Of a stretch of 64,000 nucleotides of DNA, positions 1,984-54,919 are shown piece after piece. A model generated the notes under the pieces. The model worked only from the letters and a program-made list of their open reading frames with translations. It was not told where the DNA came from and did not search any database. The stretch is taken from the NCBI GenBank assembly GCA_010909165.1, contig VJWM01000117.1, positions 496,001 to 560,000 of the forward strand. The letters run 5' to 3'. This stretch comes from Anthoceros angustus. Taxonomy: Eukaryota; Plantae; Anthocerotophyta. How positions within the stretch are numbered: position 1 is the first letter of the stretch; each line of letters starts with the position of its first letter. The translations under genes and the position numbers were made by a program.

Positions 1984-2003
1984 CCCTAAACCCTAAACCC
2001 TAA
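1984..2003 (+). repeat. Short interstitial telomere-type repeat (CCCTAAA)x~3
   Basis: ccctaaaccctaaaccctaa; the same tract lies at 23287-23306 in copy B. Confidence 0.7.
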
Positions 2004-10799: not shown

Positions 10800-11040
10800 T
10801 CAAAGCACTTCTAGGCTGCGACTGGATGCAACAAGCTGGCCCAGACCCTCATCAAGCCGCCTGCCTTCCAAAACCTTCACAGGGAAGGGTTGGACGCCAT
10901 GCCCCAACAGAATCACACTTCATCCTCCCGAGCCAAGCCGATTTGCCACTTGTGGAAATACCCAAGCCAGGGCCGACACTGCGGCAGTTGGCAATGGCTG
11001 TCAACACCTGCTTGCGCACTCGCCAGTGCCTCCCCTCATA
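10800..11040 (-). pseudogene. Deleted N-terminal LRR fragment of a third TRN1-like ROCO paralogue
   Basis: EGRHWRVRKQVLTAIANCRS...CEGFGRQAA...LVASSRSLEVL matches 32880-33125 and 7920-8160, with internal deletions and different residues at the LRR beta-strand positions. Confidence 0.75.
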
Positions 11041-11509
11041 TGCTATGCTATGCTTTCCGGGACAGTAAATGTGGCCCGTGCATGATGGCTTTGCAGCACC
11101 GCAAGGCCCACAGGTGTGGCTACGGATAATCATGGTGGAGACTGGAGGCTGGTGGGGAACTTCCGGACAGATGATAGGGCTCATGGGGTTGTTCATGGAT
11201 GGTGTCAAGTCAAGGCCGTAACCTGATGCCCTTGGCCTGCGCGGATCCCAACACCGCCGCATCCAGAGGATGCCGAACCCACGCCCACCACAACTCTGAA
11301 TATCTCTACAAACTGATGTGAGAGCTCCCATAAAGGAAAGACAAAGAAAGAAAGAAAGATGCATACAAAGGTGAGGGCAGAAAGACGAATAAAAGGTGCA
11401 AAGGGCCTGGCCGCAACTACTCTTCAAACACCTCCAAGCTCCACTTCAAGTTTTTCATCCGCATGAAACCATATCCGATGATATCCGACGATGATATCCG
11501 CAGCTCTGT

Positions 11510-14746: not shown

Positions 14747-15544
14747 CGGAATCGCTCGCGACCACTGACCATCAGTACACCACAGTCCCTGAGCTACACC
14801 CCGCAACTCTCACCACAAAAGATCCTGAGGAATCACTTGGAACAGACAGGCCACAAAGACAATCAGAACTGCACTCGTTTAACTCCTGAATGACTTGTGA
14901 GGTGCGGATGCGGCATCAGAGCGGAAGCCACAGGGTGGAGCACAGACATTCAAAGACTGAGAACACATGGAAACCAAAAACCTAGCCCGGAAGCGTAATG
15001 TCTATCCGAGCATTCCACCACACCGCTCCTGCAGCCGTAACTGTCCGTAACCAAGTTCTTGGCAAAAAGCAGGCCGGCAGAGCAGGCCACATCCAATTTC
15101 CTGCGCTTCCGACAACTCCTGAGCTTGTCCAAGATGCTTGCAGCAGCAACAGCTGAGAATCGTGAGCTACACGCTCCCTCCTCTGTCGGAAAAGCAAGGA
15201 ACAATCACATAACACGATAGAGCTGCTTGCGCGTTCCAGCAGTGGCAGGCCAGAGCCGCGTAGGTGAAGAGTGGCCAGCGCTCGTCACACCGAGCCGCGG
15301 GCTTCCGTGCTCACATTGTTCCTGCGGCCATTGTGGCGCTGTCTGCCACAAAGGGAAGGAGACAACCGACGCGACGGTCTCGTGTCCAGCTGACACACGA
15401 CTCGTCGAATAGTTCCAATTAGCATAATTCCGTTTTTCTTCCTTTCTTTGAATTCAGCCCCCGGAAGCGCGAAGCATAGATTTGAGGGGAGGGCCTGAAA
15501 AGACAAGAAGACACTTCAGCTCGTTCAACGGAGCAAGACAAGCC

Positions 15545-17589: not shown

Positions 17590-18345
17590 CCCACCGCCGG
17601 ACACAGCAGACGGCCCTCCGTCGGATAGTCCGACGGAGCTCCGCCGGATCGTCGGACAACTGGACGGAGCTCCGCCGGACCGTCGGACAACTGGACGGAG
17701 CTCCGCCGGACCGTCGGACAACTGGACGGGGCTCCGCCGGACCATCGGACACCGGACGGACCGCCAGGCGGAGGAAGAAAGGACCACCGTGGCCGGCGGG
17801 CGGAAGGAGGTGGGGCCCACCGTGGCCGCCCGGCGGAAGGAGAAAGGTGGTCGACCATCGGCGGCCACGGTCCGGCGGACCACCGGGGACCCGGGGTCCG
17901 GCGGGTACCCGCCTGAACGGACCAGCGGGTCCCCGGCCGACCACCGGGCGGACCAGCGGGTCCCCGGACCACCGGCGTGGGTCCCCGGCGGACCACCGGG
18001 CGGACCAGGTCCCCGACGGACCCGGGTACCCGCCGGACCGCGACCCGGGGTCCGTCGGGGACCCCGGTGGTCCGCCACGGGGTCCGTCCGGGGACCCGCT
18101 GGTCCGCCCGGTGGTCCGCCGGGGACCCGCTGGTCCGCCCGGTGGTCCGCCGGGGACCCGCTGGTCCGCCCGGTGGTCCGCTGGGACCCGCTGGTCCGCC
18201 GGGAACCCGACGGACCGCCGGACCGCACCCGGGGGTCCGTCGGGGACCCGGGGGTCCGTCGGGGACCCGGTGGTCCGGCGGGGACCACGGTGGGCCGACG
18301 GACCACCGTGGTGTCCTCCTTCTTCCGCCGTGGTCTACGGACCTA
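17590..18345. repeat. GC-rich tandem plus inverted (foldback) repeat block
   Basis: 31-bp unit acggagctccgccggaccgtcggacaactgg x~4 (17633-17760). A second 31-bp unit, ccggggacccgctggtccgcccggtggtccg x~3.5 (18088-18200), has its reverse complement at about 17915-18010. Inner hairpin ccccgacggaccc (18011) / gggtccgtcgggg (18048). Followed by an abrupt AT-rich tract (18410-18480). Confidence 0.85.
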
Positions 18346-18572: not shown

Positions 18573-20572
18573 TCATTTCTCATCCTTGGCTTCACGATCC
18601 TCCCAACTTGTGGCACCCAAATGCACCTGTGTTATACTTTTCAAGCCTAGCTTGATCCACCACCTCGAGCCAATTTGTTTCCTTTGATATGGAACGCAGA
18701 ATTTTTCTCTCCCAACTTGAACGCTTAAATATGGTGGCACAACCCTTTTCCTCATCTCAGAATCTTCTAGGAACTCCACAGGCTTGGGCCGACGCTTAGT
18801 TGCCACTATAGATGCAAAGGGCATCCGCACCTTTTCTTGCTCACTCACATTCTTCACAGGAGGTAGATGTATCCCCTCACAACTTACAATATCCTCATGT
18901 GGTTGTGCTTCAATCTCCTTTCCCTTCTTCTGTGGCAGGTCAGGCACCTTGGCCACAATGTGCGCTTCATCACACTCCTCCAACCCTCCGGAAGGTGGAT
19001 TCGCTGCTCCCTTAGGAACACGCAACTTCTCATACTCAAGAGGTGTCTTTCCTGTGTCACTCGCACCATTGGGTACATGACTCATCTGGCGATTGGCACC
19101 CAGGTTCATGTTCTTAGCTTCAGCATCACGCGAAGAGTGACCCTCCACAATCATAGCAAAGCATTCCCTCATTTCTTGAATATGCTTCCCCTGTAAATCT
19201 TTTAGTGTGTCCTTCATCAACACAATTTGAGGGATTAGCTTCTTGGAGAACGTCTTCCACTCAGGCCCCATTGGGTTTTGAGCTTTTGCTTCATCCCTCT
19301 CCACCCGAAATATCAAGGATTGTGTTGCTTCTTCATGCAATCTGGAACTCAATTCTTCATTCTGCTTCATTTGGAGAGATAACTTGGTCTTCAAATTCAT
19401 CATACAACATTGAAGTTTCTTCACTTGTTCTCTCAGCTCCTTCATTTCCTGCAAACGACCTTGCTCCGCTTCTGCATTTCGCGCAGCCAAGGCACATGTC
19501 CAGGAGTGAGACTTTTTCTTCAGCCTGTCCAACTCCAACTCATCTTGCTCCAGGGTTCGTAGAAGCCTGGGAATAGTCGCAGGATACCGTGTAAGGATCG
19601 CTCCAATGATCCATCAATGTACCTCTCATGACCTCATCCTTCGAGGCACATTGTCGCTCTTCTAGTTTAGGGGACACCATTGTAGGGGCCTCGGAACCCA
19701 CTTTCGTGTAGCAGTCTTCTCCCTCTCCTTCTCTTTGCTCATGTTCCTCATAGTAATATGAGGCATCCTCGTCGGTCTCCTCTTCCATCATTCTTACTTC
19801 AAAAAGTGCATCCTCCTCTTCCTCCGGCTTCAAAACTTCATTTCGTAGTATAGATGTACAAGGAAGGCCGACATATGAGACGCCTTCGGATAACTCTTTT
19901 CCAAATTATGCTCACTTACAGCCATATCCCACATTGTAGTCCCCAATCAATCATCTCTCCTTCACAATCTTCCTAAAACCGCCAAGGTGTAGAAAGATAA
20001 TTGTCCTTTTTGCGTGCAAGAAGCCTAGTATCCTCGCCATGGCTCGGTGACGGACACTTCGACTGCGATTTTCCAACCATTGCTCGCTCTCGCCGAGGCC
20101 GGATGCACGAACATCCCTTCGTGTACAACGGAATCCCGCTGCGTCGTCCCCCCGCTCGTGTAGGAGGCGCCTCCAACCTCATCGTCGAGATGGAGCGCCC
20201 TGACCATGAGCTCGCGGGTCGATGCAGACGCCACCCGTTCCATCTCCACCTCGCCTCAGCGTTTCACAGAGCTCTCTGACCAGCGTGGCGCTGCTGTGAC
20301 GCCACTCCTTGCCCAGAAACTCGCAGCCCCAATCGGCCAGAAACGGCCTTACCAAGGCTTGATCCGAGGGATGCCATGCTGAAAAATCCAGATCGCCTCC
20401 TCTCAATCCAGTTCCCCGCCGATTTCTGCCTCCAATGCGCAATGCCTCTGATTGCTCTCAAGTACTCAGACGCGCTCCCACCGCATCCAGCCTCTTTTCC
20501 ACATCCAAGATTAAATGGTCGTATACCTATGTATGTATATGTAGGCTGCTTTCGTTTCGGCATTTTTGGCAC
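18573..20572 (-). mobile_element. Degenerate transposon-associated ORFs (acidic / coiled-coil, retroelement accessory-ORF-like)
   Basis: Intronless minus-strand ORFs 19540-19833 and 18573-19538 (acidic, then coiled-coil) and 20025-20572 containing WGCEFL...ATLVRELCETL, reminiscent of the LVREF motif of plant retroelement accessory ORFs. No catalytic domain recognised. Confidence 0.4.
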
Positions 20573-21130: not shown

Positions 21131-23190
21131 TTTTGTAGGTAGGTGTTTTGAGACTTCCCACCTTGAGGTGGGAGTGTGAACTTGAACATGTGGTTTTTGT
21201 GGCTGCAATTGTGCAAGCATGAGTGACTGCGCACAAGTGTTGGCTTTTCGGTTTGTTTTGTTGCTTCAAGATTGTCTTCCACGGCTCGTTCTAGGGATTC
21301 CAGATCCGAATGACACAACTACACTGTAATCACTATCAAGGCATATCATTGTGACCTGCAAAATTTCGCAGAGGCCAACAAACGTTGCACTTGAGAATCA
21401 CAGGCGCCACCTTTCCCGTCTGAGGCAGTGAATGGTGCATCACAAGACTGGGTTGCTTCATTTGCCGAGCCTGTATGACCATGTCATCGGCGAAATCCTT
21501 CTGAAGTTGCCTGAAAAGCAAGATCCTTCCACAATGTGAGTCCTGGCTGCTACACTGCACAAAAATCGAGAAACAAAGGTGCAACACGCTAAGGAAACAA
21601 CACGCAGCTACATGAATACCGGTGTCACTTGAAGATGTTATGTGTGTGAGCGTCCAATTTCCTTCATTTGCCGAGGTTGTATCAGCATCCCATTTGCGAA
21701 ATCCTTCTGAAGTCACATGCATTCAGTCAGTCAATCAGTCAAGGTACTTGCATTATCACTCAAGGCAGACATTTATCTGGCTGCGAACAAAAACGTGAAA
21801 CAAAGGTGCAAGACGCTACACGCACCATATCACCTAATATGCTCCACACAAAAGCGTTAGAGTTCGCCCTCACATGTCCGTCTCCTAAGACACGCAGGGT
21901 CACTCCGAGCGGCATGATGCGCATGAGGAAGCGGTGTTGGATGTCTGGCCCAACAGCCGTGATAGCAGCCGTGGATGCCAGATTCAAATTACTATCATCT
22001 TCTGATCTGAAGCTGTCCCATACATCCAACTGCAAGCATAACAAAAGCATGTTAGTACTCAACCACACCGAAACGTAGGGACTGCTCCCACATCCTGTCC
22101 TTCCTGCACATACAGTGAAAGCAACATGTCTAAGCGGAGGATTTGCAGTCAGTTTCTCGGCGAACGCGGGCCATACTTGCGAACAAAAGTTCCTATATGT
22201 ATGTGTTGCCCGCCTGTTTCCCATGTATGTGTTCTGATCCGATGGAAACCCTAAAACCCTTATCAAGAAAAGATATGTATGACACCATCGGAACACCAGG
22301 CCGATGAACGTGTGATAGAATGTTTTTTCCCCGCGTACGAACCCCGGAAGTCGTGTACGATAATGCGGTATTATACGTGAGTATCTAAAGGATTCCGTGG
22401 CATATTCTCGTAGCGCATAATCAAAAAAAAGAAAGTCACACACACCCCCAGTACTGATCCAGTATTCCATACATGGGAGGAAGGTGGGCATAATTTGTTT
22501 TCTTTCTACCTCAAAAGTGCAAAAAAAGCAAAAGAAAACTTTTCTTGTTTGGTACGCCATAGGCAAAGCACCCAGGACAGATGCATACTTCGTACAGGCC
22601 CAAATGCTATCGGGACAAGAAACTCTCTTTGAACCTTTCAAACCAAAAACTTCTAAAAGTTAAAAAGCCTCATGGGTCGGATTCCCGCATCACGGGGCAT
22701 GTGAGGTCACCCGTGCGAATTGCTCGTACATGTGAATTCAATACATAAATAAAAATCAAGATTAAAGAGAGTTAAAAAAATTTGAGGATGTCTGATCCGA
22801 TGCAAAAATAATCTGTGAATGATAAAAAATAAGATAAATATAAATTAAAAAATTTGGTAAAGATAGTTATGAAGTTCTATAATAAACTAGGTGATGAAAA
22901 AAGATTGAAAATAAAACGATTAGGGATAAAATCAAAAAGTATAGGGAGAAATTATTTTTTATAATTTTATGTCATAAACTTTAATATAAACTAAAATTCA
23001 AAAGACTTAGAAAGGATTGCAAGAGATATTGCAGTGTATTGCATGGTGCTACAAAGAACCAAAATAACTAGGTCTAGATATCAATGGTAAGGCATATCAA
23101 ACGTGACTACCCATAAAGGAAAGAGGAAAGATAAAAAGGTGCAAAAGGCCTGGCCGCAACTACTCTTAAAACACCTCCAAGCTCCACACA

Positions 23191-24243
23191 TTAGGACAAA
23201 TGGACACATATTTATAAGAACGTCATGATTAAACATCCTGAGCTTAGATCGATACTTAGATGGGGTGCCTTAAGGGAGTGCATGCACCCTAAACCCTAAA
23301 CCCTAAGCCATTGGTGCAATTAGCTTAGGCACACCATGGTACAAGTTGTTAAGTACCCACAGAAATCCGTCCTTAGTGGACTTCAATAAAATTCTTCTTG
23401 GCCGCTTCATATTGATCCCCATTCTGCACGCCTCCCGAGGCGATCAGTCCTAGTCTCCTCCGGAGTGGAGAAAGGTGCATCGTGAATTCTATTGTACCAC
23501 CAAATTGCCGGCTATGTCCTCATCGCTCAAGAAGACATCATGAGTCAATCGTAAGGTCGATACACATCACATCCCAGCGGATGCGATTTGAAGAAAGCTC
23601 ATGCAAGGCCTCCCAAGATGATGAGATGGAAGCCTGGGTCGCACGGAACGGAGTTCTGCAATGCAACGCAGCGGCAGTGTGAGAACCAGCTCAATGAAAA
23701 CAGCCATGGCGGTTGATATCGGTTTAATGCGGTCATTAAGGACCGCTCCGCATCCATAGAACATAGAAGAGCAAAAGACACCGCAAAGAATAAAGAACCT
23801 TGGGCATCATGAGAATGTGCTTAGGGTTTCGAGGTCTGGGCATTTGCCTGCGCACGGTTCGTCAGTCTAATGATCGGGCGAAAGCTGGTCTGTTTTGCTG
23901 CACCAGCTGAGCAGGATGCAACTAAGCTCTAGGACTGGCTTTTGAGATCCAGAGACGTTGATGCAAGATCTACTAGGATGGAATTCGGTGCTTGCCGGTT
24001 GCAAGCGGAGCAACCAACGCAATGCATTACTTTTTTGGGCACTGAAGAAGAAGAAAAAGAATTTTATTTAAGTCCACTAAGGACGGATTTCCGTCATGGG
24101 ACTTGGTACTTAACAACTTGTACCATGGTGTGCCTAATCTACTTGCACCAAGGGCATCCACTCCCTTTAGGCACCCCATCTAAGTACCGATCCAAGCTCA
24201 GGATGCTTAATCACGGCGTTCTTATTGTGTCCATTTGGCCTAG
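23191..24243. mobile_element. Non-autonomous element bounded by ~200-bp imperfect terminal inverted repeats (MULE/foldback-like)
   Basis: Left arm 23191-23400 (ttaggacaaatggacaca...ttaggcacaccatggtacaagttgttaagtacc...aaatccgtccttagtggactt) is the reverse complement of right arm 24050-24243 (aagtccactaaggacggattt...ggtacttaacaacttgtaccatggtgtgcctaa...tgtgtccatttggcctag). No clear target-site duplication. Confidence 0.65.
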
Positions 24244-24459
24244 GCCATTTGGACACTGGCTATGTGCTCGGATCAATTGGGCAGAGAAGGACATTGCTGA
24301 AATAGTATGTCATTTCCAAAGTTGAACTTTCTGGTTGCATTAGAGATGATTAACTGGAGGAGAGACGGAGAAGGAGAAGGAGAAGAAGAAGGAAGCTGAA
24401 TTTGGTGAAGGTTCACCATCGCTGCGTAAATTGAATTGCGCACCAGGAGGAGGCGCCCA

Positions 24460-25375
24460 CGACGTTCTCTGATGATTCTGATCTGGATGCATTGCTGGAT
24501 GCTGAAAGCAGCGACGAGGATGACAGTGATGAACATGGAGGTACAGGCCTCCACAGGCGGATCGATGATATCCTCAAGGATTTGCCACGCGGCACGGGCC
24601 GGAGAACGTGGATGTGGACCAATTCGAGGAGATTGAGGTGGGCCCTGCTGTTGCCAGCCCAGCCTTGCCTGCAGGAGGGCCGGTTTTGGAGGAGGATTTG
24701 CGACACGCCGACACTTCAGAGCCGTGCAGTTTGGACTCCCAGGATGAGGGTGACGATGTGGAGGTGGAGGACCAGGATGTGCTGCCACCAGAAACTGCAC
24801 CATCTGCTGGTGCCTTGGATGACGAGAAATTGCTGGCCGACTTGGCTGCCCAGCTGCTGGAGTGGGCGCCGATTCCCTGTGCGTGGGTGCTCTGTCTGAC
24901 GTTCAGAGCTCTGCGTCTGGCATCTCCCAATCCAGCTCAGAGGCCCTAGGCAGGGAAGATGGTGGGATGCCGGAGGATATGCTTCAGAGTACGAGCACCA
25001 ACTTGTTTGAGGGAGACAGAAAGCGGGAGCGAGCTTTGTCGGGGTGGGAGGTAAGGAATACTTTCTCAAGTCAGGGGCCTCCAACGTCACTTGGAGGCCG
25101 GAGCTGCGTTTGCAGCAGCTGCAGCTGCAGCTGCAGCTTCCTCTCGGTTATTTAGGAGTAGAATGATTGCTGACTTGGAGAAGTCTAGCAGCTCACATCT
25201 CTCTTCAGCTCATACGCTTGGTGATCCCTCCAGATCAGTCGACAACCACGAGCTTGTTGAGGGCGACTCATTAGTCCAGTCCCTAAGAGATCCAGACCGG
25301 ACTGACAGCTCGGGAGTAGCTCAATCTTTGTCTTCGCATACACCTTTGGCTTGTCGCCCTTATGTTTTATCATAA
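24460..25375 (+). pseudogene. Captured fragment resembling the N-terminal exon of plant VPS8
   Basis: DSDLDALLDAESSDEDDSDEHGGTGLHRRIDDILK followed by GAAFAAAAAAAAASSRL recalls the DLDSFL..SD..HRTVDEIL and GAALAAAAAASRL motifs of plant VPS8 N-termini (recognised from memory, not searched). No WD40 exons follow, and the block is absent from copy A. Confidence 0.5.
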
Positions 25376-25594
25376 ATGCTTGTCGAGGCACGGACAACCG
25401 TCAAGGCCTAAGACGTCGAAGAGAAGCCATCTCGTCAGCAAGAGAGCTGGGGAGGTTCGACCCCTGCCTTTCTGTGAGTGACTGTCTCGTCGTTTTCTCA
25501 ACCAGTCATGGGAGAACTATGTTTCAGAGATGCCGAGAAAGGCACAAAATTTATCCTCGCTTTGGTGGAAGCCATCGTTGAGGGCTCTCCAACC

Positions 25595-25670
25595 GAATAG
25601 ATGTCAGGAAGGCATGGTTGTACCCGATTCCTTGACTTTTGTGTGCCTCTTGCTGGCATGTGCAGGACTG
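25595..25670 (+). pseudogene. Isolated PPR motif fragment
   Basis: QEGMVVPDSLTFVCLLLACAG is a typical P-to-L motif boundary; it abuts the point where similarity to copy A resumes. Confidence 0.5.
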
Positions 25671-26703
25671 GAGGGCTGGTGGCGGAACTTCCGGACAGAA
25701 GATAGGGCTTAAGGATGGTGTCAAGTCAAGGCCGTAACCTTTGGTGCCCTTGGCCTACGCAGATCCCAACACCGCCGCATCCAGAGGATGCCGAACCCAC
25801 GCCCACCACAACTCTGAATATCTCTACGAACTGATGTGAGCACACTTCCCGAGGCGCACGTTTCAAGAGGTTGGGCTGGATTTTGAGATGGACCACCCAG
25901 GCAGTCAAAACAGCACTCGGCACTAAATCGGTCGCATACCCCGGGGAAATTGTGAATGTGAATCCCAGTGGGAGCCAGCTTGGTCCTCGTTTCCACAGTG
26001 TTCCCACGTGCAAGGACCAGCCGGGTCCCCACTGTAAACGGGAGCTTGGCAAGGACCAGCCTGTTCCTCATTCCTACACTTTGCCATGTGTGTAAAACAT
26101 TGGTGGCTACACGGAGTTCTCCCCCGCCAAAATACCTAGCTAAGATGCTTGGAGAACGAGATGCGCCCAGGAGAAATCGGTAGGCAGCCTCTTCACAAGA
26201 ATACTTCCCTCGGATGTCAGGAATATTCATGGACGGACAACAAATATGCAAGCCTCCATTTCATGGGGAGCGAGCTGAATGGAACTGCTGTGATCAGTTA
26301 AGCAAGCTCTTGCAGCCAGCTGCAGGCCTCTTGCTTGTCCCCCGGCTTGGCCGTTCTTACAAGATACTGATGCACAGATGGAAGTTTGAAATAGCCATTA
26401 CTCATGGAGCAGGGCAGGGTGTCATTCCTGGCCATTCATGCATGCTCAGACCGGAGCATCGCTCCCTTTACCAACCAGGGGCCTGCTGTTGTTAATGAAT
26501 TCTGGAACATGTTCAAGAGTCACAATCTTGAACAACTCAAAAGATGAATTCAGAGGTGGCCTTCAGCAAAAACTGATGTGAAACAAAGCACGATTGGCTA
26601 CACATCCTTATACCACTACCCAATCACGTGGTGCAGATCGCTCCTCCAGTCAGTACCGAATCCCGGGGTGATGCTGCAACACACGTCGTTTGAGTAGCTC
26701 CCA

Positions 26704-29700
26704 TCAGAGTTTCCGATAAACACGTTTGCCAATTCCCCTCTGCATACACGTTGGGCAAACCCATGCCACTCCTTCTCCTCCCTCAGGCCTTTTCCGAAAT
26801 TGCACCTTATGCAGTTGGAATATCTCGCCGATGTGATCCTTTACCAACGGCTTGACCAGATCACTCAGGGTAATCCATGCCTCCTTCACGGGAATGTCCT
26901 GGTCCGCCGATGGACCTGTCAGGTTGAGATCTACCTTGGACAGGTCTGCGTCCAGAGAGGCCGCAGTGAGATACAGCGCTCCATCCAAGCTGGTGAAGGG
27001 TCGGGAACCGCATTCCCAATGCCGGCAGCCACATGTAGGCCAGCTTTCACTAGGAAAACCAAAACCTTGATACCACTGATTGCTAGGGGCCTGATCCACT
27101 TCCACTTCGCATCCTCCAATGTCAAGTCGAATCCAGTTTGGCCCTCCACGATGTGATTCCCAAAGATGTTTTCGCACATGAAGTGCAGCTTAGCCGCTTT
27201 GCCCACACGCACCCGTGCAATCAATCTCTGTGCTAAACCCATGTCTGCAGTGGTGATGTAGGGACGTCTGGGTATCTGACTGCTTTCTAATTCTGCAGAG
27301 AAATTCATAATCTCATCCATCTTAGCAAGCAAGAATTGTTGAGTAGCTTCCTGCCCAGTCTTGATAGCGCTCATCTCATGTTGGATAAGTTGCAAAGTCT
27401 CGCCAATTCTATCCACTTTGACACCCACTGCTTTCAACTCTGTCTCCACGGTGTGCTTCAAATCTCTTATCCCTTGAATGATGGTTTGCAACAGTGGCTC
27501 CCTCATCTCCGAGTGAGTTGTTCCAGGGAGGGACATAGTACGTCGGATGCTGACAGACCGAGACGTTTGAACTGATGCGTCTTGTTGTGCGAGCACCCCT
27601 TTCTCTGTAGGCAGGACTTCCTCTACAGCTGCATCTATGTTGGATATGGTTTGAAGGAGACCTGTTCGTCGCCTTTGCAAGACATCCAAGAGTTCACCAG
27701 TACTTAAGAGCTCATCAGCTCCCTCAAAGGCACTCTCCAAAGAGGCTTCAGGACATGCTGGCCACGACCAGCTGAAGTCGGCCAGATCCATTGAGGAGAA
27801 AATCTCCCCTGTACAGTCTTGTTGGTCTGCAAAAACACGCTTGAGCAAATCCTGCGTTAGCACTGACTGGTTATGCCGGTAGATACAGAGTGTGAGGTTT
27901 TCGACACACTCTGTCCTGATAATTCCTTCCACAAGCTCGACTCCCGGACTGCCTTCAGGGGAAGCACAAAAAGATTTCAACTTTGCAACCACATGTTCCT
28001 TGAGAAACTCGACAGTTTCATCTCTGCTCTTGGATGACCTCACCAGAATATCAATATGGTCACCGATGTCTCCGGTGTCCTCTCCGATATCCCCACTGCT
28101 TTCCAAAAACACAACCATACCATCGCACAAAAAGTTGATGAGGTTGCGTTCAATAAGATATTGATGAGGTTGCATGCCATGGAATCCGGTTAACAAATCC
28201 TTTCGAAGGCAGACCTGCAATACGCAAACCTCCACAATGTCAGTGGACAGGTTGAAGACACACACCATCAAACCAAAGACATGTTGGTAGTTATCGTACT
28301 TGGAATCTAGGAAAAAAGCCTGGACCAAGAAACGTCTTCGTCTTGTCAAGGCACTGTAACCTCCTCCCGAGGTAATTGTAATTGCTTGCTGTATTCACAG
28401 TTTCCCAGTTCAACTTTCGTCTACCAGGAAGAGCGTCACCATTACCGTCGGCCATGGTGAGGGGAACGAAGAATCCGACTCGTCGAGTCCCATCCTCTTC
28501 ATAGCATAAGTTGAGAGTGGTCATCAATGATGCCAGATGTTGCCTTTCAATCCCCTCCGCTTGTGTGCCTCTGAGAATCTCATCCAAGGTGGAATGAAGC
28601 AGACTTTGAGCAACAAATCCATCTGAGGAATGCGACAAACCTCTAGGAAGCTCTGGTTAGAAGGTGAATGAGTCGCCCTAAAAATTGTGTGATCCAGTGT
28701 GGATTTATCACCACAACATCTGTATCTTGAAAACAGATGATACTACCCACATCATGCAAATAGGCAAGAATGGCTCCCAATCGTTCCCCCTCATCTTGAA
28801 CCCCACCTTCGTCGAGACTGTCTTCGTCGAGACTGTCTTCGTCGAGACTGTCTTCGTCGAGACTTTGTAGCTCGTTTTGGAACAAAGTTTGAAGTTGCTG
28901 TTTCCTCACAATCGGTTGAGCTGGATGTTGGGCTACCCAGGCAGTCAAATCAGCACTCAATCGGTTGCATACCTCGGGTACCCGAAACAGTTTGATTGCA
29001 AATAGAGCTCGAAACGATTCCATGAGTGCGTCCAGCAAGGGCTTCACACTCTTGGCAGATCGAGCGTCCATGGAGAAGAGTGTTTTTGTTTCCACGTGAA
29101 CAACCTGTTCAAACTCGGTGGCCAACTCTGCCAGAACGGGTTGAAGGAGATTCGGCAATGCTTCAGCATCAGAACGCTTCATCTTGTCCACATGAGTTGC
29201 CACCACAAATATTTGAGGCAAAGTAGAGCCCACGTTGCGACAATTGGAGTTGATGAACCTAAGCCAGTACGCCAAGCTCCTTCTGAACCTGTCCTGCAGG
29301 ACATTAGACGGATGCAGTTGGGGAGGTTTCCGATCATCAAATGGGCTGAACGCAAACAGGAAGATACATGCTTGGTTGAAGGTCGGAAAAAGGTAGTCTT
29401 GCAGAGCTCGGTAGTGAGCTTGTCCAGCCAGATCCACATGAGTTGCCACCACAAATATTTGAGGCAAAGTAGAGCCCACGTTGCGACAATTGGAGTTGAT
29501 GAACCTAAGCCAGTACGCCAAGCTCCTTCTGAACCTGTCCTGCAGGACATTAGGCGGATGCAGTTGGGGAGGTTTCCGATCATCAAATGGGCTGAACGCA
29601 AACAGGAAGATACATGCTTGATTGAAGGTCGGAAAAAGGTAGTCTTGCAGAGCTCGGTAGTGAGCTTGTCCAGCCAGATCCCACATGGTAACTTGCATAT

Positions 29701-32700
29701 CATGGTCGTTGCGCAACACCTCGATTTCTATGCCTTCCGTTCTGGTACCGGTGACGGAAGCCATCCGTCGCCAAGCACGAAATATTTTTCCCTTCAGTCG
29801 AGCTAGAACTTGGCTGAGCTGGAACTCGGGTGATGCGGCTGTGTGTCGTCTCCATGCGCGAATCATGGTGGTGCGGAGAGTGGTCTTCCTGCCAAAGGGC
29901 ACCGCACAGGAAGAGGCGCCCAGCCTTGGGCATCACAGGCCCTTGCCTGCCCACGAGCAAAGGCCAGTAAGCCTCTTGAGTGGCATTGCCTGCCAAGGCT
30001 GCATTGATGATTGCGTCCTTTCCTTCCGCTTCCCATGTTGTCCTGATCCTGATCTCCGTAACGTCTTGTTGACTTGAATACAGTTCATCAAGTCTCTAAA
30101 CATGTCATGATCCAGGGCGTCCCAGAGAAATGTCGAGCTTTTTCAGAGATGCGTTGCCCTCCAAGGATCTCAGCAACTCTTTCTTGAACGAGGCGTGGCC
30201 CGAGATCCACATGGTAACTTGCATATCATGGTCGTTGCGCAACACCTCGATTTCTATGCCTTCCGTTCTGGTACCGGTGACGGAAGCCATCCGTCGCCAA
30301 GCACGAAATATTTTTCCCTTCAGTCGAGCTAGAACTTGGCTGAGCTGGAACTCGGGTGATGCGGCTGTGTCGTCTCCATGCGCGAATCATGGTGGTGCGG
30401 AGTGGTCTTCCTGCCAAAGGGCACCGCACAGGAAGAGGCGCCCAGCCTTGGGCATCACAGGCCCTTGCCCACGAGCAAAGGCCAGTAAGCCTCTTGAGTG
30501 GCATTGCCTGCCAAGGCTGCATTGATGATTGCGTCCTTTCCTTCCGCTTCCCATGTTGTCCTGATGTTGATCTCCGTAACGTCTTGTTGACTTGAATACA
30601 GTTCATCAAGTCTCTAAACATGTCATGATCCAGGGCGTCCCAGAGAAATGTCGAGCTTTTTCAGAGATGCGTTGCCCTCCAAGGATCTCAGCAACTCTTT
30701 CTTGAACGAGGCGTGGCCCGAGATCCACATGGTAACTTGCATATCATGGTCGTTGCGCAACACCTCGATTTCTATGCCTTCCGTTCTGGTACCGGTGACG
30801 GAAGCCATCCGTCGCCAAGCACGAAATATTTTTCCCTTCAGTCGAGCTAGAACTTGGCTGAGCTGGAACTCGGGTGATGCGGCTGTGTCGTCTCCATGCG
30901 CGAATCATGGTGGTGCGGAGTGGTCTTCCTGCCAAAGGGCACCGCACAGGAAGAGGCGCCCAGCCTTGGGCATCACAGGCCCTTGCCCACGAGCAAAGGC
31001 CAGTAAGCCTCTTGAGTGGCATTGCCTGCCAAGGCTGCATTGATGATTGCGTCCTTTCCTTCCGCTTCCCATGTTGTCCCGTTGATCCTGATCTCCCGTA
31101 ACGTCTTGTTGACTTGAATACAGTTCATCAAGTCTCTAAACATGTCATGATCCAGGGCGTCCCAGTAAGAAATGTGGAGCTTTTTCAGAGATGCGTTGCC
31201 CTCCAAGGATCTCAGCAACTCTTTCTTGAACGAGGCGTGGCCCCGTAGATCCCACAAGTGCAGGACACGCAGTGCTTTGCATTCCGGGAGCAAGTGGACA
31301 AGGCGCATCCACACATCCGTCGCAGCTGATGGCGTATTGGAGTCCTGCTCGAGACGAAGTTTAGATATGGTGGAGTTGCGGCGTAACCCGTCCAGGCCGT
31401 GGATGAGAGCATATGGAGTGGTGTCAAGCTCCTCGATACGATCGTTGGTGCGCAGCATTCCGGCCAGGGCGTCTGCCAGGCCTACCTCCCCATCCTCCGA
31501 GATCCCCAAGTCCAGGACACGCAGTGCTTTGCATTCCGGGAGCAACTGGACAAGGCGCATCCACACATCCGTCGCAGCTGATGGCGTACTGGAGTCCCGA
31601 GACGAAGTTCAGATATGGTGGAGTTGTGGCGTAACCCGTCCAGGCCGTGGATGAGAGCATATGGAGTGGTGTCAAGCTCCTCGATACGATCGTTGGTGCG
31701 CAGCATTCCGGCCAGGGCGTCTGCCAGGCCTACCTCCCCATCCTCCGAGATCCACAACTCAAGCTTTGTGACGCCAGAGATGGAGGCATTCTCATCCTCA
31801 TCCGCGCGGGTGAAAGCAAGTTTGAGCACAGTGCCCATGGGCCCGAGGCCACCGGGAATGGGACCCCGCAATGCAACGCCATGATCCAACTCCAGATACC
31901 GGAGCGTGGCACAGAGCGGAAGAGCATTTCCAATACACTGGGCTCCCGCCACATCCATGCCGATGTCTTTCAGTAGCAGATTCTTGAGACGGGGAGCCGT
32001 GGCCAGAATGCGGGCCAGGTGCTGTGCCCCTTCAGCACCTCCCACCTCGTTCCGTCGTAAGTCCAAGTACTCCAGGACAGAATCCTTGTTGAAGCCTTTG
32101 GCCAGGGCACCCAGTCCCGCGGCATCAAGCCCAACTTCGGATACGCCAAGCGAGAGTAAGCTGCGACTGGATGCAACAAGCTGGCCCAGAGCCTCGCAAG
32201 CCGCCTGCCTTCCAAAACCTTCACAGTTATTAACAAACAGCAAGTCCAGGACACGCAGTGCTTTGCATTCCGGGAGCAACTGGACAAGGCGCATCCACAC
32301 ATCCGTCGCAGCTGATGGGAGTCCCGAGACGAAGTTTAGATATGGTGGAGTTGTGGCGTAACCCGTCCAGGCCGTGGATGAGAGCATATGGAGTGGTGAC
32401 AAGCTCTCGATACGATCGTTGGTGCGCAGCATTCCGGCCAGGGCGTCTGCCAGGCCTGCCTCCCCATCCTTCGAGATCCAAATAAGCTTTGTGACGCCAG
32501 AGATGGAGGCATTCTCATCCTCATCCGCGCGGGTGAAAGCAAGTTTGAGCACAGTGCCCATGGGCCCGAGGCCGGGAATGGGACCCGCAATGCAACGCCA
32601 TCATCCAGCCAGATACCGGAGCGTGGCACAGAGCGGAAGAGCATTTGCAATACACTGGGCTCCCGCCACATCCATGCCGATGTCGGTCAGTGACAGATCT

Positions 32701-33281
32701 CTGAGACCGGGAGCCGTGGCCAGAATGCGAGCCAGGTGCTGTGCCCCTTCAGCACCTCCCACCTCGTTCCCCTGTAAGTCCAAGTACTCCAGGACAGAAT
32801 CCTTGTTGAAGCCTTTGGCCAGGGCACCCAGTCCCGCGGCATCAAGCCCAACTTCGGATACTGAAAGGATGAGTAAGCTGCGACTGGATGCAACAAGCTG
32901 GCCCAGAGCCTCGCAAGCCGCCTGCCTTCCAAAACCTTCACAGTTATTAACAAACAGCAAGTCCAGGGAAGGGTTGGACGCCAGGCCCCCCAACAGAACC
33001 GACACTTCATCCTCCCGATCCAAGCCGATGGCCCACGCGCTGTGAATGAATATGGACTGGAGACTGCCGCAGTTGGCAATGGCTGTCAACACCCGCTTGC
33101 GCACTCGCCAGTGCCTTCCCTCATCACCACGGATTCGCCTAGTGAAGTAGTAGTCGCCATACTTTTCATCATTATGCAGGCTGGGCATATCGGACACGGC
33201 ATTCCGGCCCAGATCTAGCAGCAGCTTCTGCAGGTAAACCGGCAGCGCGCGCCAATCCTCCGCCTCACGCTCTTCCGCCAT
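26704..33281 (-). CDS. TORNADO1-like LRR-Roc-COR (ROCO) protein, copy B, with internal tandem duplications; frameshifted as assembled
   Basis: MAEEREAEDW start; LRR ORFs 32601-33281, 31482-32561 and 30973-31566; Roc motifs (P-loop ending KTTL, frameshifted; RTEGIEI; WDLAGQ; VVATHVD); COR (LHDVGSII...VVINPHW; LGRRLQC...GFFPRFQV); a coiled coil; C-terminal HFMCE and AWVCPTC with stop at 26704. No introns evident. Confidence 0.85.
28807..28864. repeat. In-frame 15-bp tandem repeat (SLDED x4) in the COR region of copy B
   Basis: cttcgtcgagactgt repeated; copy A has a single unit at about 6160. Confidence 0.85.
29187..29685. repeat. In-frame 246-bp tandem duplication of the Roc G3-G4 segment
   Basis: tccacatgagttgcc at 29187 and 29433; the protein reads ...VVATHVD|LAGQAHY...VVATHVDKMK; junction microhomology ccacatg. 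Confidence 0.9.
29681..31255. repeat. ~520-bp tandem triplication spanning the last LRRs and Roc G1-G2
   Basis: ccacatggtaacttgc at 29681, 30207 and 30725; the junction joins MWDL(AGQ) to LWDL(RGHASF) through shared tgtgg(g)atct. Confidence 0.9.
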
Positions 33282-34930
33282 GCTCTGCTCTGCTATGCTG
33301 TGCTATGCTTCCCGGACTGCTAGACTGGAATGAGGGCCAGGCAGGTGCTGTGCTCCTCCAGGCCACACCACATCCCGCGGCCTTCAGCCCTGGCAGGCAG
33401 GCCCCACGCAGCGAAACTTCCCACATGGACGGCGAAACTGGCCAAACTTAAACATGCTAAAATAAGTAAATGAAGCATTTACTTTTGGTCTTGTTTTCAG
33501 GCACATGAGAATTTGTCCGGGTCAGTCGAGATCGGGACACCATCTATCACCATCCTAATGCTGAATCCAGCCGGGGCTTCGAGAAAAACGACAGCATGAA
33601 AAGATGCATTTTTAGATCCAATCTGCATCTAATCTGATCCGAGGCAAGAAATCCCTTCCCACGATGCTCTCCAGCACAGACGACTATGCTATGCTATGCT
33701 ATCCGGGACAGTAAATGTGGCCCGTGCATGATGGATTTGCAGCACCGCAAGGCCCACAGGTGTGGCTACGGATAATCATGGTGGAGACTGGAGCCTGGTG
33801 GCGGAACTTCCGGACAGATGATAGGGCTTATGGGGTTGTTCATGGATGGTGTCAAGTCAAGCCCGTAACCTGATGCCCTTGGCCTGCGCGGACGGATCCC
33901 AACACCGCCGCATCCAGAGGATGCCGAACCCACGCCCACCACAACCCTGAATATCTCTACAAACTGATGTGAGAGAGATGTGAGAAAGAAAGAAAGATGC
34001 ATACAAAGGTGAGGGCAGAAAGACGAGTAAAAAGGTGCAAAGGGCCTGGCCGCAACTACTCTTGAAACACCTCCAAGCTCCACTTCAAGTTTTCATCCGC
34101 ATGAAACCATATCCGATGATGATCCTCATATTTTGGGTAGGAAACCAGAAGACGTAAATTTTGGCTATCAATTTGTCCAATTCCGCATCCTCAATCGCTC
34201 CCTCCCGTATCGTCAATCACATATTGAATCCCATCCTTAATGCCATCCTCCTCCCACATCCTCCTCCCGCATAGACATAGGCAGGTGCAAAAAACATGAA
34301 CCTCTTGAGCCCCCACCTTCGGGTGACGCCACTTTCTGATGGCCTCGAGGCGTAGCACCGAGAAACAGGGCTGATTCATATGCCCTCCAGGCAGGTGCAG
34401 AACAGAGGGACAGGGCTAGTTCCTCATGATGCTTGCAACCTGCGAGTAGAGGGACAGGTCCAGGAACCAGCTCTGTCCCTCGATTCTGCGCCTCGAGGCC
34501 ATCAGAAATTCTGGGTCAAATTCGAGTTCCCTCGAGGGCCATCAGAAATTCTGGGTGAAAATTCTAGGAACTCGAAAGTGTGTGGATGGATCGCCATTTA
34601 GTGCAACTGGCTGTAACATCCGCCATGGTCACCCACCCTGCTTTGCTCTGATCACCAGCCCTGCTTTTGCTCTGGTACCCCAACCTGCTTTTGCTCTGTT
34701 GCCCCCGACAGGACCGGGAGAGATGGAGCATAGGATGGTTGCAGGAGAGCGAGATGATGCATCCCAGTCCTGCCGACGACCTCTTGATTTGCAAAGCTTG
34801 CAAGGGACTGCGCCCAATGCCTTGCCAGGCTTGTGATACTGCCCTCGTCGGGCATCATCCATATTTGAAGGCACAGCTTACCACTATCTTAGAAAACAAA
34901 CAAGGAAACAAACACGGCCAAGGCTATACC

Positions 34931-38519
<3,589 letters not shown>

Positions 38520-38774: not shown

Positions 38775-41700
38775 ATGGATGACGGTGATCGAACGGATGC
38801 CGCGGTGCCAGCTGCCGCGCAGAAGCTTACACATGATGACGCATTGTCCTACCTGAAGGATGTGAAAGACATGTTCAAGGAGGACAAGGACAAGTACGAT
38901 GACTTCCTCGAAGTCATGAAGGATTTCAAAGCTCAGAGGTTGGCATCTCTCTGTCACTCGTCTCATTTCTGCCATGCTCCTCGGCGATTCCTTGTATAGT
39001 GCGGTTGTGGATCCTGGGTGGGTCGTGATTGTGTGGCGCATTTAGCTGTGGGCGGGGGAAGGTGAGTAATCTGTGTGATGTCCGTGCGCTGATGATTTGG
39101 TGGCTCTGGCAGGATCGACACCGCTGGCGTTATAGCGAGGGTGAAGGATCTGTTCAGAGGGCATAAGGCCCTCATTCTGGGGTTCAACACTTTCCTGCCC
39201 AAGGGATATGAGATCACACTTTTGGAGGATGAGCCACCTCCTAAGAAAGTGGAATTCGACCAGGCCATCAATTACGTGAACAAAATCAAGGTGTTTCAGC
39301 GTTTGGGTTTGCTGGTGGGATTCGCAGTGCGATCAGTTTGATTGCTGTAGAAACCTCTTTGGCGTGAATGAAATGCGAGGCCATGCTGGTCCTCCGACAT
39401 GACACGACATAGGATGTAGATGAACTAAGCTGTTTCTGTTTGTGTCCACAGACACGTTTCCAGAATGACGAACAGGTCTATAAAGCTTTCCTAGAGATAC
39501 TGAACATGTATCGCAAGGGAAACAAAACGATCAGTGAGGTCTACCAAGAGGTTGGTTACCTTTACTCTGTCTCGAAGCTGGCCGTGTAAGTTTACACGTG
39601 CGAACATCTAGAGGCTGTTACTTGCCTTTCTTTCAAAGCAGGCACTAGTTTCCGACCTAGCTGTGTACTTACTATGACATCGCACTTATGGCAGGTTGCA
39701 AACCTCTTCCACGAGCATTCTGATCTTTTAGAGGAGTTCACCTACTTTCTCCCTGACTCCAATGGGCCTCCCGCTTATGCCACTGCACTCCCACCCTCTG
39801 CAAGTAAATCAACTGGGACTCACACTGCACGCCGAGAGGATAAGGCTGCTGGCCCTGCTGTCCGACATCGCCAGATTGAGAAGCCTGTAAAGGTATGTGC
39901 TTGCTGCCTCATTTAGGGCGTTGCCAGCTGTTGTCTGGTTTTTGCTGTGGGTCATGTGTTCTCAGGTGTGCCACATGGACCAGATAATCTCTATTATCTT
40001 ATTTAGAATGATTTCTTTAAGTGTTAATAATGATTTCGAATTAGCATGTGGTATTTTATGTGAAAGTTTCCTAGTAGAGTTTTCTTCGTAAGATGCTTTT
40101 AACGTGTACGGTAAGATAGATTACGTAACTATCCTAATAAACCCATCTTCCGCTCAGAGGGAGAAGGTCTCTGCTGCCAGTGGTGATCGAGAGCGAGGGC
40201 CTGACAAGATGGAAGTGAAAGATGTGGAGCGAGTTGGTGGACGTGTTGAGAAGGATCAACGGAAAAGAACTGATAAGGAGAGAGATAGAAAAGATGACCG
40301 CAAGGACAGAGATAGGGATGAGAAGGATGTCGAGCGGGATAAACAGAGAGATTCAGAAATGCAGCGGATCCCGAACAAGCGGAAGTCAGCTCGGAGGGCT
40401 GATGAACTGATTCGCAAGCAGTCTCAAGCTGGAGATGCTGTTGAAAACTTCCCTTCTCCCCCTGGCCCGTCAAATGCAGCAGATGAGAAGCCGGCATCCA
40501 AGAGTAAGAAGCACTACACTGCGAGTTTTTGACATCAATAGTGTTCTTATTTGGCCTGCTTGCCTTCTCTGCTTATTTCAATTCTCTTGTATTCTTGGAA
40601 AGTATCTCTTAAAAGAGTGTAGTGATTTCACATGCAGGTACAAGTAATCAAAAGGAGCTCGCCTTCTTTGACAGGGTAAAGACAAGGCTGCGAAATCGTG
40701 ATACGTACCAAGAATTCTTGAAGTGTTTGAATATTTTCAGTCAAGAGATAATCAGCCGCCAGGAGCTGCAGAGCCTGGTAGGTTTTTTCTCCATCCATGC
40801 CTTTGTATTGTCAAGTGCTGTGCATAGGATCCAGTGGAAGTTATATTATTGCAAACACGTCAGAAAAGGAACACTCAGAGAAAATACAGGAGTGCAGCCA
40901 TAGAATCCTGATGTTCTCACCCTTCTATGCAGGTTAGTGACATACTGGGAAAGCATCCGGATCTGATTGAGGGCTTCAATGATTTCCTCTCTTGCTGTGA
41001 TCGCAATGGTGGTACTAGAACCTCTTGTCACCCCCCTGTTCTTTTATTATGCCATGAACTTTTTGGGCAATATGGTGGTTGCTTATGGTATTCATTTCCA
41101 TTAAAACGTCTTGTGTTTCAGAAGGATACCTTGCTGGTGTCTTCAGCGGATCCAGAAGTAAGTCATAGTTTCAAAAGGCCGTCTTTTCAAAAGGCACATT
41201 CTGGGTGATGTCAGGGTGAAGATAATTCCAAATAGAGTCGCTGATGACAATTGTTTTCTTTGTACAGAGCTGGAAAGTGTTGAGGGAGTTCCTCTCAAGG
41301 GCAAAGCGGACAGAGATCGGGACAGGGATGGCCATCGCGAGAGGGAGAGTCACCGTGATAGGGATAGGGAACTGAGGGACTGGGAGAGAGATCGGGATAG
41401 AGAGAGGGATCGTGACAGGGATCGTGAACGGGACAGAGACAGGGAGAGGGATACGAAGGACCGTGATAGAGACAGGGATAGGGACAGAGACAGGGACAGG
41501 GAAAGAGACAGGGACAGGGAAAGGGAGAGGGACAGCAAGGATAGGGATAGAGACAGGGAGAGGGACAGAGAAAGAGAACGGGATAGACAAGAGCGGGAGA
41601 GGGAAAGGGAGAAAGAGAGGGAGAGGGAAAAGAGGGAGAAAGAGAAAGAGAGTGAGCGAGAAAGGGAAAAGCGAGAAAGGGAGAAGGAGAGGGAGAGGGA

Positions 41701-44700
41701 GAGAGAGAGAGAAAGAGAGAGAGAAAGGGAAAAAGAGAAAGAGAGGGAGAAAGAGCGGGAGAAGGAGAAGGAAAGAGAAAAAGTACGTGAAAAAGAAAAG
41801 GAGGATCGAGAATGGGAGCGGGAAAGAGATAAGGATCGGGACAGGGACAGACCTGCATTTCATCCATTGAAGGAGGTGCAGAATCATAAAGGCTCTGTGG
41901 CATCTGGCAAGGAGAAGTATCTCAACAAACCTATATCTGAGCTTGATCTTTCCAACTGTGACCGCTGCACACCAAGTTATCGCTTGCTGCCAAAGAGTGT
42001 AAGGATCTTCCTGTTACCTGTTTCTGGTATGATATTGCTGTTCATGTTAGTTCTTACCACTGAATTCTTGTAACCAGTATCCGAAGCCCCGAACAAGTCA
42101 TCGGACAAAATTGGGAGATTCAGTTCTGAATGACAGCTGGGTATCTGTTACGTCTGGGAGTGAAGATTACTCCTTCAAGCACATGCGTAAAAATCAGTAC
42201 GAAGAGAGCCTTTTCCGTTGCGAGGATGATCGGTACGTTTTGGGATTTTTAGTTCATGCTTGTCCATCAGGTGCGGGCTATGCCGGATAGCTGCCTTATG
42301 GTAGTTGTGTTGGTCAGGTTTGAGCTTGACATGCTACTGGAATCTACAATAGTTACTGCAAACCGGATAGAAGAGTTAATTCAGAGGGCTCAGGATGGAG
42401 GGGTTCACGAGGAAGCATCTTTCCAGCTTGAAGACTTGTCAGGTATTGTGCATGAATGTATACCAACCTGTTGTGGACACGATGCATTGAGGAGATTGTT
42501 CCTCAACTAGTATGGAGAATTCTCACTGGCATGGCCTACATTGGTTTGCAGCCATCAATTTGCGATGTATTGAGCGGTTATATGGAGATCATGGCCTTGA
42601 CATCATTGACTCTCTCAAGAAAACTTCTACAACGTCATTGCCTGTGGTGCTGGGTCGACTCAAGGAGAAGCGAGACGAATGGGTGAAATCTCGCATTGAG
42701 ATGAACAAAGTTTGGGCAGAAGTGTATGCCAAAAATTACCACAAGTCTTTGGACCATCGCAGCTTCTACTTCAAACAGCAAGACAAGAAGAATCTGAGCA
42801 CAAAAGGTAATCTGGTTTCTGGCTTCTCTTATTCCCAGTACCAGAAATTGACTTGCTGTTTCAGGGATTTGCTGTTGACACCTTGAGACTGACGTCTTGC
42901 AAACTCCCAGGCATGTTGGCCGAGATCAAGGAGACCAGTGAGAAAAAGAGGAGGGAAGATGACACAGTATTTGCCATAGCAGCTGGGAATGCACTACGGA
43001 TTGCTCCAGATTTGCAGTTTACATTCTCAGATCCAGCGGTGCATAATGACGTGTACCAAATAGTGAAGTTCTCCTGTGACGAGCTTTTCTCACCAGAGAA
43101 TAGTAGCAAAACGATGTTGATCATGACAGACTTTATTGAGAAATTTTATGGAGTACCACCTCGACCACGAGGTGTAGAAGATGCTGAGGAGGCTGTCAAG
43201 GTTAAGGGGAGTGATTCAAAGAGCAGTAGAAGTCGTGGTGAAAGTGCATCTAGTGGAGATAGTGACAATGCAGAAATCGCGACAGGAGCCCCAATGGAAT
43301 TAGGGAATGACCATAAAGAGAGAACTTCTACTGTTGAGGACTGTACCACAGCTTCAAGTCGTCCCAAGGCATTATTTGGTGACTCCTCAACTGCAGCTAA
43401 TCCAGATAGTGAGCGTTTTGGTTATGTTACTGGTGAGAATGCCTATGATGCTGCTCAACGATCTAGGAAAGGAATCGAAGCTGTTCAGGAGGGAGCTATG
43501 TGTGCTGAGGGGTCTGTTGTGCATGCTGGAATAGCATGTGATGCATCAAAGCAGCCTCCTGTGCTTGGTAGGCTAGCAGATGTTACAGCAAGGGAATCAA
43601 CTGCAGGAAATCTCCCAGCCAACATCCCTGGTGGAGATCCCACATCTGGGGCGAACAAGGTAGCTGATCTTTACTTTTACTTTTTGGTAGGGCAATATGG
43701 TCTCAAGCATTTTATGCCTTTTTGAGCTCTGGAATACAAGTTCTGGGATGCTCATGTAACTAGCTCAAAAATGTCTCGGATGCAGGAAAGTAAGGTGGTG
43801 AAGGCTGTCAAACCTGAGTCTTCAGGTGCAAAATGTACCAAACCTGAAGCGTCTCTGGGTGGACCTACTGGAAGAGTCGATCGAGAGGAAGGAGAGTTGT
43901 CACCTTCTCCAGAAGGAGATGATTATCGAAGTGATGTTTATGTGTGTGCAAGTAATCTTGCTGCCAAGGACAATGGCGTAAAAGATTCTAGTCAGCGGCA
44001 AGATGAAGAAGAGGATGTTGATGGGGAAGGAGAAGGAGAGGGTGAGGGAGAGCATGATGCTGATGCAGATGATGAAGGCGAGGAAAGTGGCCAGAAGACC
44101 AGTGAAGACAGTGAAAATCTCTCAGAAGCGGGTGAAGAGGTTACAGGCAGTGAATCAGGGGATGGAGATGATCCATCTCATGATGAGGAGGAGGAGGAGG
44201 ATGACGATGATCTTGAAGGGAAAGCTGAGAGTGAGGGTGAAGCTGAGGGGATGGCAGATGCAGATGATGGTGATGTTGATGGGAATCTGCGTTTAGCATC
44301 GCCTGATAGGTCATGTGGAATGTGCAAGCCTCTTGCAGCTCGAGCTGCCACAACTGACATGCCTGGGCTGGGTCCGACTGAAACATTTTATGGGAATGAT
44401 GGCTTTTGCATCCTCCTCAGATTGCACCAGGTGAGGTAGATTGCCGCTCTTGCACAAGGAACGACATTTCACTGTCATTTACTATTGATTGCAAGTGGCC
44501 ACCTACTAACAGAGGTGGCTTTTGTCTACCAGATTTTGTATGAGCGCATCCTGTCTGCCAAGACAAATGCACAGGCAGCTGAGCTGAAATGGAAAGTTAT
44601 GAAGGACACTGCCCCTCCAAATTTGTACGCGAGGTGGGTTTACTATTATGTTGGATACAGAACCTATAGTGCATACACTTGACTCATCGTCATGGCAGTC

Positions 44701-54568: not shown

Positions 54569-54919
54569 ACTTCTACAAGGCAAAACCTTCACATGGCACG
54601 AGACTTCCTTCCAATCGATGCAGTCTGCCTGTGTGGTACCACACTAAGATGCATTTCTAACATGGTCCACCATCTTCTTTGTCATCAGCTGATGGAAGAG
54701 TTGCCCGACCACCTTCTCGCCTGCGGACACGACTCTCATTCTCCTGCCAGTGCCTGCTACAGCACAGATTTTTTTTTTTCGGTTATTTACTCGTAGTATT
54801 TATTTGTCTAAAGTTCGCTTGGACATTCCCATACTGGGATGGGACTGAGTCTCCTAAGCCCATTCAACGGGCCGTTGTTGGGTTCTTGTTGTTGACTGAC
54901 GGCTGGAATGGTGAGCAAA

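Follow-up and report, generated by a model that had tools for sequence, protein, structure and literature searches.

In variable plant NLRs and receptor-like proteins, such as flax L, RPP8 and lettuce RGC2, the exposed sites of the xxLxLxx motifs are positively selected, and in the ribonuclease-inhibitor-like fold of leucine-rich repeats (LRRs) the beta-strands form the concave binding face. The variable lymphocyte receptors of lampreys are extracellular and are assembled somatically from cassettes. Closest in architecture are the LRR-ROCOs of the brown algae Ectocarpus and Saccharina, which combine LRRs with Roc-COR without a kinase, are expanded and clustered, include many disrupted copies and show positive selection on concave-face residues; immune recognition by these proteins is still a candidate hypothesis (PMC3341825, PMC11378527). 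In seed plants, TORNADO1 (TRN1) is a developmental gene (PMC4104024). Reviews credit plants with one or two Roco genes (PMC11378527); in one of them Roco genes are listed, among plants, for flowering plants only (PMC4104024). The literature covered, subscription papers excepted, contained no account of Roco genes being expanded or variable in bryophytes or other land plants.

The window analysed here, a 64-kb stretch of DNA, carries two minus-strand genes, copies A and B, which align colinearly with P0153, an intact LRR-Roc-COR relative of 1,399 residues from public assemblies that served as the tblastn query against the stretch. Copies A and B and a fragment, C, are clustered and broken as assembled, and the breaks may be errors. 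The family parallels the brown-algal ROCOs in positive selection on concave-face LRR sites. The brown-algal repeats, however, have 24 residues, occupy one 72-base exon each and are shuffled and alternatively spliced, whereas the hornwort Roco repeats have about 28-40 residues, are ribonuclease-inhibitor-like, share a single exon and differ through codon changes. TRN1 likewise comprises ribonuclease-inhibitor-like LRRs, Roc-COR and a tail in about 1,400 residues, has the same COR intron position and lacks a kinase, but its LRR windows are unenriched and one or two copies are expected of it, whereas the hornwort family is multi-copy and its windows are hypervariable. As in variable NLRs, the paralogues are near-identical outside the exposed sites and lie in tandem clusters with fragments, although the NLR switch is an NB-ARC ATPase and that of the hornwort family a putative Roc-COR GTPase with the LRRs N-terminal to it. 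Diversity on the LRR concave face is also the point of likeness to the lamprey receptors. What is new here is the test on paralogues from a second lineage together with the TRN1 control.

A cluster of TRN1-like LRR-Roc-COR genes

Copy B (26704-33281, minus strand; ATG at 33281, stop at 26704) is matched end to end by P0153 in tblastn (27-42%), and is frameshifted and internally repeated as assembled; it was read through in local scripts with X at the frame breaks. The N-terminal cap and a first set of repeats 1-10 (B1, 32241-33281) are followed on the same strand by a second set of repeats 2-10 with other window codons (B2, 31507-32250), joined to B1 by a 10-base microhomology, and then by repeats 7-10 once more with repeats 11-12 (B3 and last repeats, 30988-31515). 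The LRR windows, all on the minus strand, lie at 33039-33059, 32943-32963, 32853-32873, 32769-32789, 32682-32702, 32598-32618 and 32472-32492 in B1, at 32136-32156, 32052-32072, 31965-31985, 31881-31901 and 31749-31769 in B2, and at 31345-31365, 31249-31269, 31165-31185 and 31078-31098 in B3 and the last repeats. Three tandem units of about 525 bases (29676-31243, minus), which contain the last LRRs, the P-loop and the start of Roc, differ from one another by 1-3 substitutions and meet at microhomologies; they and a 247-base tandem duplication within Roc (29187-29687, minus) are probably assembly products. Roc, COR-A, COR-B and a TRN1-type tail occupy 26704-29836 (minus), a part matched at 41% by a Nothoceros protein, and no kinase or protease domain was found after them. 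The GT-AG intron in COR (28215-28299, minus) is at a position common to the P0153 gene and TRN1 orthologues. The COR of copy B alone also carries an in-frame array of 3.9 copies of a 15-base unit (28807-28864), which has no counterpart in the deepest contig of run X1.

Copy A (4063-8304, minus) has one set of 12 LRRs, Roc-COR and the tail, with an intron at 5559-5644 (minus) and many single-base deletions. It lies, with its downstream DNA, in a segmental duplicate (1-8538, unstranded) whose partner is 21171-33541 (89-98% by self-BLAST). Fragment C (10812-11039, minus) consists of repeats 1-3 without the repeat-2 window. Part of the 3' region of the genes comes next, and the two pieces are inserted in a copy of the DNA upstream of B. 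A GT-AG intron of this locus (10391-10512, minus) is spliced out in run X1, and a loose end of X1 at 33685 is the spliced join. The chimeric locus (10239-11486) is transcribed and spliced, and its flank at 10209 is present in DNA run X2 too; the locus might represent a captured fragment or give rise to regulatory RNA.

Pfam detected Roc in copy B above the cut-off (E 1.7e-7) and also in copy A, where the P-loop (6913-6987) and the in-frame DxxG and THxD motifs supply G1, G3 and G4 of a Roc GTPase. COR, which directly follows Roc as in ROCO proteins, was matched below the cut-off in the frameshifted copy B (COR-A, E 2.4e-6) and above it in the colinear, intact P0153. Roc and COR were the only Pfam domains detected in the Roco genes; NB-ARC, TIR, CC or other executioner domains were not. 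Pfam and the P0153 alignment thereby uphold both the TORNADO1-like LRR-Roc-COR architecture and the non-NLR character proposed in the initial annotation. By analogy with characterised Roco proteins, the copy A/B family may have a GTP-binding switch with a nucleotide-dependent dimer cycle; a search by sequence with the Roc piece found no solved structure. Searches used individual pieces of the genes. A protein search with the LRR piece gave no match, the Atlas search gave generic LRR clusters only, and the representative-protein search returned two close relatives amid generic LRRs; none of the proteins retrieved was near-identical. In an AlphaFold2 model of the first 210 residues of B (pLDDT 82), which spans six motifs, every one of them carries a strand, and the structures most similar to the model are the NLRP1 LRR, ribonuclease inhibitor and NOD2. 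In this model the first six B1 windows are predicted to be the beta-strands of a ribonuclease-inhibitor-like fold, in agreement with the earlier assignment.

Substitutions are concentrated in the LRR windows

The LRR windows were set in advance from the LxxLxLxx consensus alone as codons 2-8 of each motif, with twelve motifs in total. Between B1 and A, 21.4% of aligned bases were substituted in the windows and 1.6% in the scaffold (Fisher p 2e-18). The corresponding values were 23.9% and 2.4% for B2 against A (p 4e-15), 16.3% and 2.3% for B3 and the last repeats against A (p 1e-6), and 13.3% and 0.9% for B1 against B2 (p 9e-11), so that the ratio of windows to scaffold ranged from 7 to 15. Outside the LRRs, A and B differed by 2.7% in the Roc-COR-tail part and by 2.5% in the 3' flank. 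A near-identical scaffold with strongly different xxLxLxx windows and a near-identical Roc-COR half were both claimed in the initial annotation and hold (0.9-2.4% in the scaffold against 13-24% in the windows), and the variants that it quoted were found where it had placed them. Its further claim of clustered in-frame, multi-base changes held for six windows. The other windows are disrupted by deletions, most of them frame-shifting, so its exclusion of long-read error was overstated: it was in the LRR windows, too, that bases went missing in the assembly. Deletions, mostly frame-shifting, occur in most windows of copy A, in several of B and in fragment C, and gap openings are commoner in the windows (14 in 173 bases) than outside them (7 in 682). 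A same-length in-frame pair was available for only 6 of the 12 windows.

Codons were counted in these six windows, in frame in two copies, with one independent pair per window. At the exposed positions 16 of 30 codons were altered, all non-synonymously and with 0 silent changes, while only one of the 18 interleaved structural codons was altered, with no silent change. Over all pairs, 14 of the 24 changed exposed codon pairs differed at 2-3 bases. A four-class codon model gave omega of about 37 for exposed codons, 0.67 for the scaffold and 0.85 for Roc-COR (likelihood-ratio test p 2e-22); the value of 37 is crude, as it comes from six windows and is inflated by the multi-base codon changes and by any homogenisation of the scaffold, and that of 0.85 reflects weak constraint or errors. 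A pathway-averaged pS of 0.28 at exposed codons, a by-product of the multi-base changes, was left unused. A local mutation hot spot and, separately, old retained tracts are both disfavoured because the leucine codons between the changed codons are spared. Regional hypermutation was rejected on the interleaved codons, which show no silent change.

The same bias in a second plant, but not in TRN1

Among named proteins the closest belongs to the hornwort Nothoceros aenigmaticus (40-41%) and carries a weak COR-B match; this accords with the proposed origin in a non-seed plant, and the plant is probably a hornwort. Roc-COR is only 28% identical to that of Nyssa TRN1, against 55-86% among TRN1 orthologues. 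TRN1 sequences make up a clade of short branches (support 100/99) in an unrooted tree, whereas the copy A/B genes group outside this clade, on long branches, with P0153 and liverwort proteins. The copy A/B genes are therefore ROCO family members and relatives, not orthologues, of TRN1. The LRR of P0153 lies within one exon, and in the 64-kb stretch at least six repeats share an uninterrupted frame. What distinguishes the two contigs of the P0153 type (L001 and L003) is a pair of introns, one at the P-loop and the other in COR; their positions are those of TRN1 orthologues, and copies A and B lack the P-loop intron.

In a profile search of metagenome contigs, four paralogous loci of another, unrelated plant were recovered along with true TRN1 orthologues. 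The paralogues lie beside the TRN1 clade in the tree. LRR frames are open in three of the four (L016, L018 and L019, the peat paralogues), all partial genes. L016 and L018 are extended at the N-terminus by a long additional stretch; the fourth locus, L007, is also TRN1-like LRR-Roc. Among the three, 25-35 of 50 exposed codons were changed, against 13-26% in the scaffold and 1-3 of 30 structural codons, and a paralogue model has a strand on all ten motifs. Omega at exposed codons was 3.8-4.2, with 1 rejected at p 5e-7 to 3e-10 in three pairs that are not independent of one another; scaffold omega was 0.76-0.94. In TRN1 orthologues the enrichment at exposed positions was absent (0.18 vs 0.19, 0.35 vs 0.34 and 0.58 vs 0.47, not significant), and therefore the bias is not a property of the fold. 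The contrast drawn earlier with a conserved TRN1 is thus sustained, since exposed positions in the orthologues vary no more than the scaffold. The window bias is present in two separate subfamilies, and the positive omega tests at this locus and in the metagenome paralogues agree with the locally focused diversification proposed at the outset. The metagenome paralogues are also better experimental material than the broken copies A and B.

Assembly damage and read evidence

The Anthoceros angustus draft was assembled from Nanopore reads with wtdbg and Pilon, and has 49.6% GC and a size of 119 Mb against an estimate of 107 Mb (PMC7027989). Both genes are frameshifted throughout as assembled, with 34 gap openings in 2.6 kb of Roc-COR. 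Every join in copy B (B1/B2, B2/B3, the three 525-base units and the 247-base unit) passes through 8-13 shared bases, and duplications with the same joins are found in CFAP65 and other unrelated DNA; the extra copies together make up about 9% of the 64-kb stretch. Tandem duplications at 12974-14756, 34931-36346 and 60502-63896, of 0.5-1.7 kb and 97-99% identity, one of them inside CFAP65, have imperfect junction microhomologies of 9-13 bases. This duplication signature is probably assembly-wide. A contig of run X2 with a depth of 300 lacks the 247-base unit, and contigs of another species pass from repeat 10 directly into the last 525-base unit. Because the microhomologies are shared with unrelated duplications and these contigs skip units, the repeats of B are probably assembly products. 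The two internal LRR sets described in the initial annotation are indeed in the sequence, but a real internal duplication of one gene is probably not what they represent. B1 and B2 probably come from different paralogues, since their scaffolds differ by 0.9%, more than the CFAP65 pair (2 in 1,700). Real shuffling of LRR modules at in-frame junctions was rejected overall, as the same junctions occur in CFAP65 and unrelated DNA and also cut Roc, although it could have occurred in one copy. It may be that assembly damaged two intact genes in copies A and B, or that both are young pseudogenes, and the exact LRR-window haplotypes are unreliable.

The read evidence consists of collapsed contigs of runs X1 and X2. 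X1 is an RNA run: the fragment-C GT-AG intron is spliced in it, and its depth is absent over 33356-33532, where DNA run X2 has depth. As X1 covers LRR and Roc parts, within a mapped stretch that stops short of the intron of the gene itself, the Roco subfamily appears to be transcribed. A gap-free 407-base variant of X1 across repeats 1-5 has 34 other letters, most without a displayed position, and a 199-base X1 contig matches B2 at 31547-31744, where the assembly is frameshifted, with 2 other letters and 1 gap. In X2 the depth is about 20 for the long divergent contigs and 225-300 for those of the conserved Roc part. Uncalibrated by a single-copy gene, these depths suggest 10-15 near-identical copies, although two or three are possible. 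Copies A and B, fragment C and the contig variants of X1 and X2 together bear out the proposal of a multi-copy family. Of the 27 best-supported read differences in the LRRs, which come mostly from related species, 14 fall in the windows, which are 24% of the LRR (p 0.002). The window pattern itself is not an artefact, because short-read contigs contain gap-free divergent variants and the open-frame metagenome paralogues show the same window bias.

Proposed function and alternative explanations

We favour, as probable though well short of certain, an expanded cytoplasmic family of TRN1-like Roco proteins whose concave face is under strong diversifying selection and recognises fast-changing non-self, most likely microbial. 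Changing partners, most plausibly microbes, are proposed because the selection on the binding face is so strong. A ligand bound at the LRR would shift the nucleotide-dependent monomer-dimer cycle of Roc-COR, as expected from Roco biology (PMC4104024). Since neither kinase nor protease follows, the signal might leave by way of the conserved tail or be handed to a partner, much as sensor NLRs work with helpers. The scaffold would be held about 98% identical by recent duplication and by exchange of sequence, with selection retaining different surface codons. More broadly, the chances appear about even that non-seed land plants have a further class of intracellular immune receptor, with a Roco GTPase switch in place of NB-ARC and LRR faces diversified in at least two subfamilies, and that seed plants retain only the developmental TRN1. 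The expansion of Roco genes, with surface selection like that of NLRs in two plants, suggests a GTPase-switch receptor class in land-plant immunity; a transformable bryophyte would open the idea of ROCOs as immune receptors to test, and the question arises whether TRN1, in its developmental role, is a domesticated recognition protein.

Diversifying selection reveals an arms race or discrimination rather than its agent, and the main rival to microbial recognition is accordingly that the selection is real and the partner is not a pathogen, as in the choice of cyanobacterial or fungal symbionts, mating or allorecognition, or opposition to selfish elements. Hornworts host cyanobacteria. Symbiotic bacteria were also inferred in PMC7027989. 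This rival appears unlikely, though worth keeping: the same pattern occurs in a separate subfamily of another plant, for which general defence is the simpler account, and the closest parallels are NLRs and brown-algal ROCOs.

Much less probable is that the pattern is mostly an effect of assembly, in which long-read consensus and multi-mapped polishing flattened the scaffold and left mixed or wrong letters in the windows. The concentration of indels in the LRR windows, the extra microhomology-joined copies, CFAP65 included, and the mosaic of informative sites would fit such an origin, as would the three 525-base units, which have B-specific scaffold letters in common and unlike windows. Error would not, however, spare the leucine codons between changed codons, polishing can only relocate variation already present among paralogues, and neither the gap-free divergent short-read variants nor the same bias in open-frame paralogues of separately assembled metagenome contigs is expected from it.

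We give similarly little credence to targeted rewriting of the windows, by cassette conversion from fragments or by directed mutagenesis, and still less to its operation within one plant, which we regard as very improbable. The frequent 2-3-base codon changes on a 2% background, the different windows on the same scaffold letters among the units and the transcribed fragment locus between the genes are what it would produce. Against it, silent sites inside the windows are untouched, unlike in regional hypermutation, and the DNA contig depths fall into classes of about 20 and 130-300, as expected of germline paralogues. Signs of a diversity-generating retroelement were likewise missing: changes affect all four bases without an adenine bias, and a scan of the larger ORFs revealed no reverse transcriptase.

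Free drift of surface positions in redundant or dead copies, although compatible with the frameshifts, the rearranged fragment and the weakly constrained omega values of the scaffold and Roc-COR here and of the peat paralogue scaffold, is largely refuted and receives slightly less credence again, as drift leads to omega near 1 rather than 4-37 and cannot yield window changes of 13-24% where the non-coding 3' flank differs by 2.5%.

Neighbouring features

Neighbours of the Roco genes are a PPR-DYW gene and CFAP65 (Pfam), a combination that indicates a land plant whose sperm are flagellate. The PPR-E-DYW editing factor has an open 759-residue frame at 52313-54592, with a second PPR frame on the opposite strand at 54942-55559. 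Long open frames at 21760-22641, 42853-44439 and 18573-19538 have no Pfam match, and the first sits within the segment duplicated along with the Roco genes. GC-rich arrays of a 31-base repeat and a long purine-rich low-complexity tract were observed at 17600-18312 and 41360-41800.
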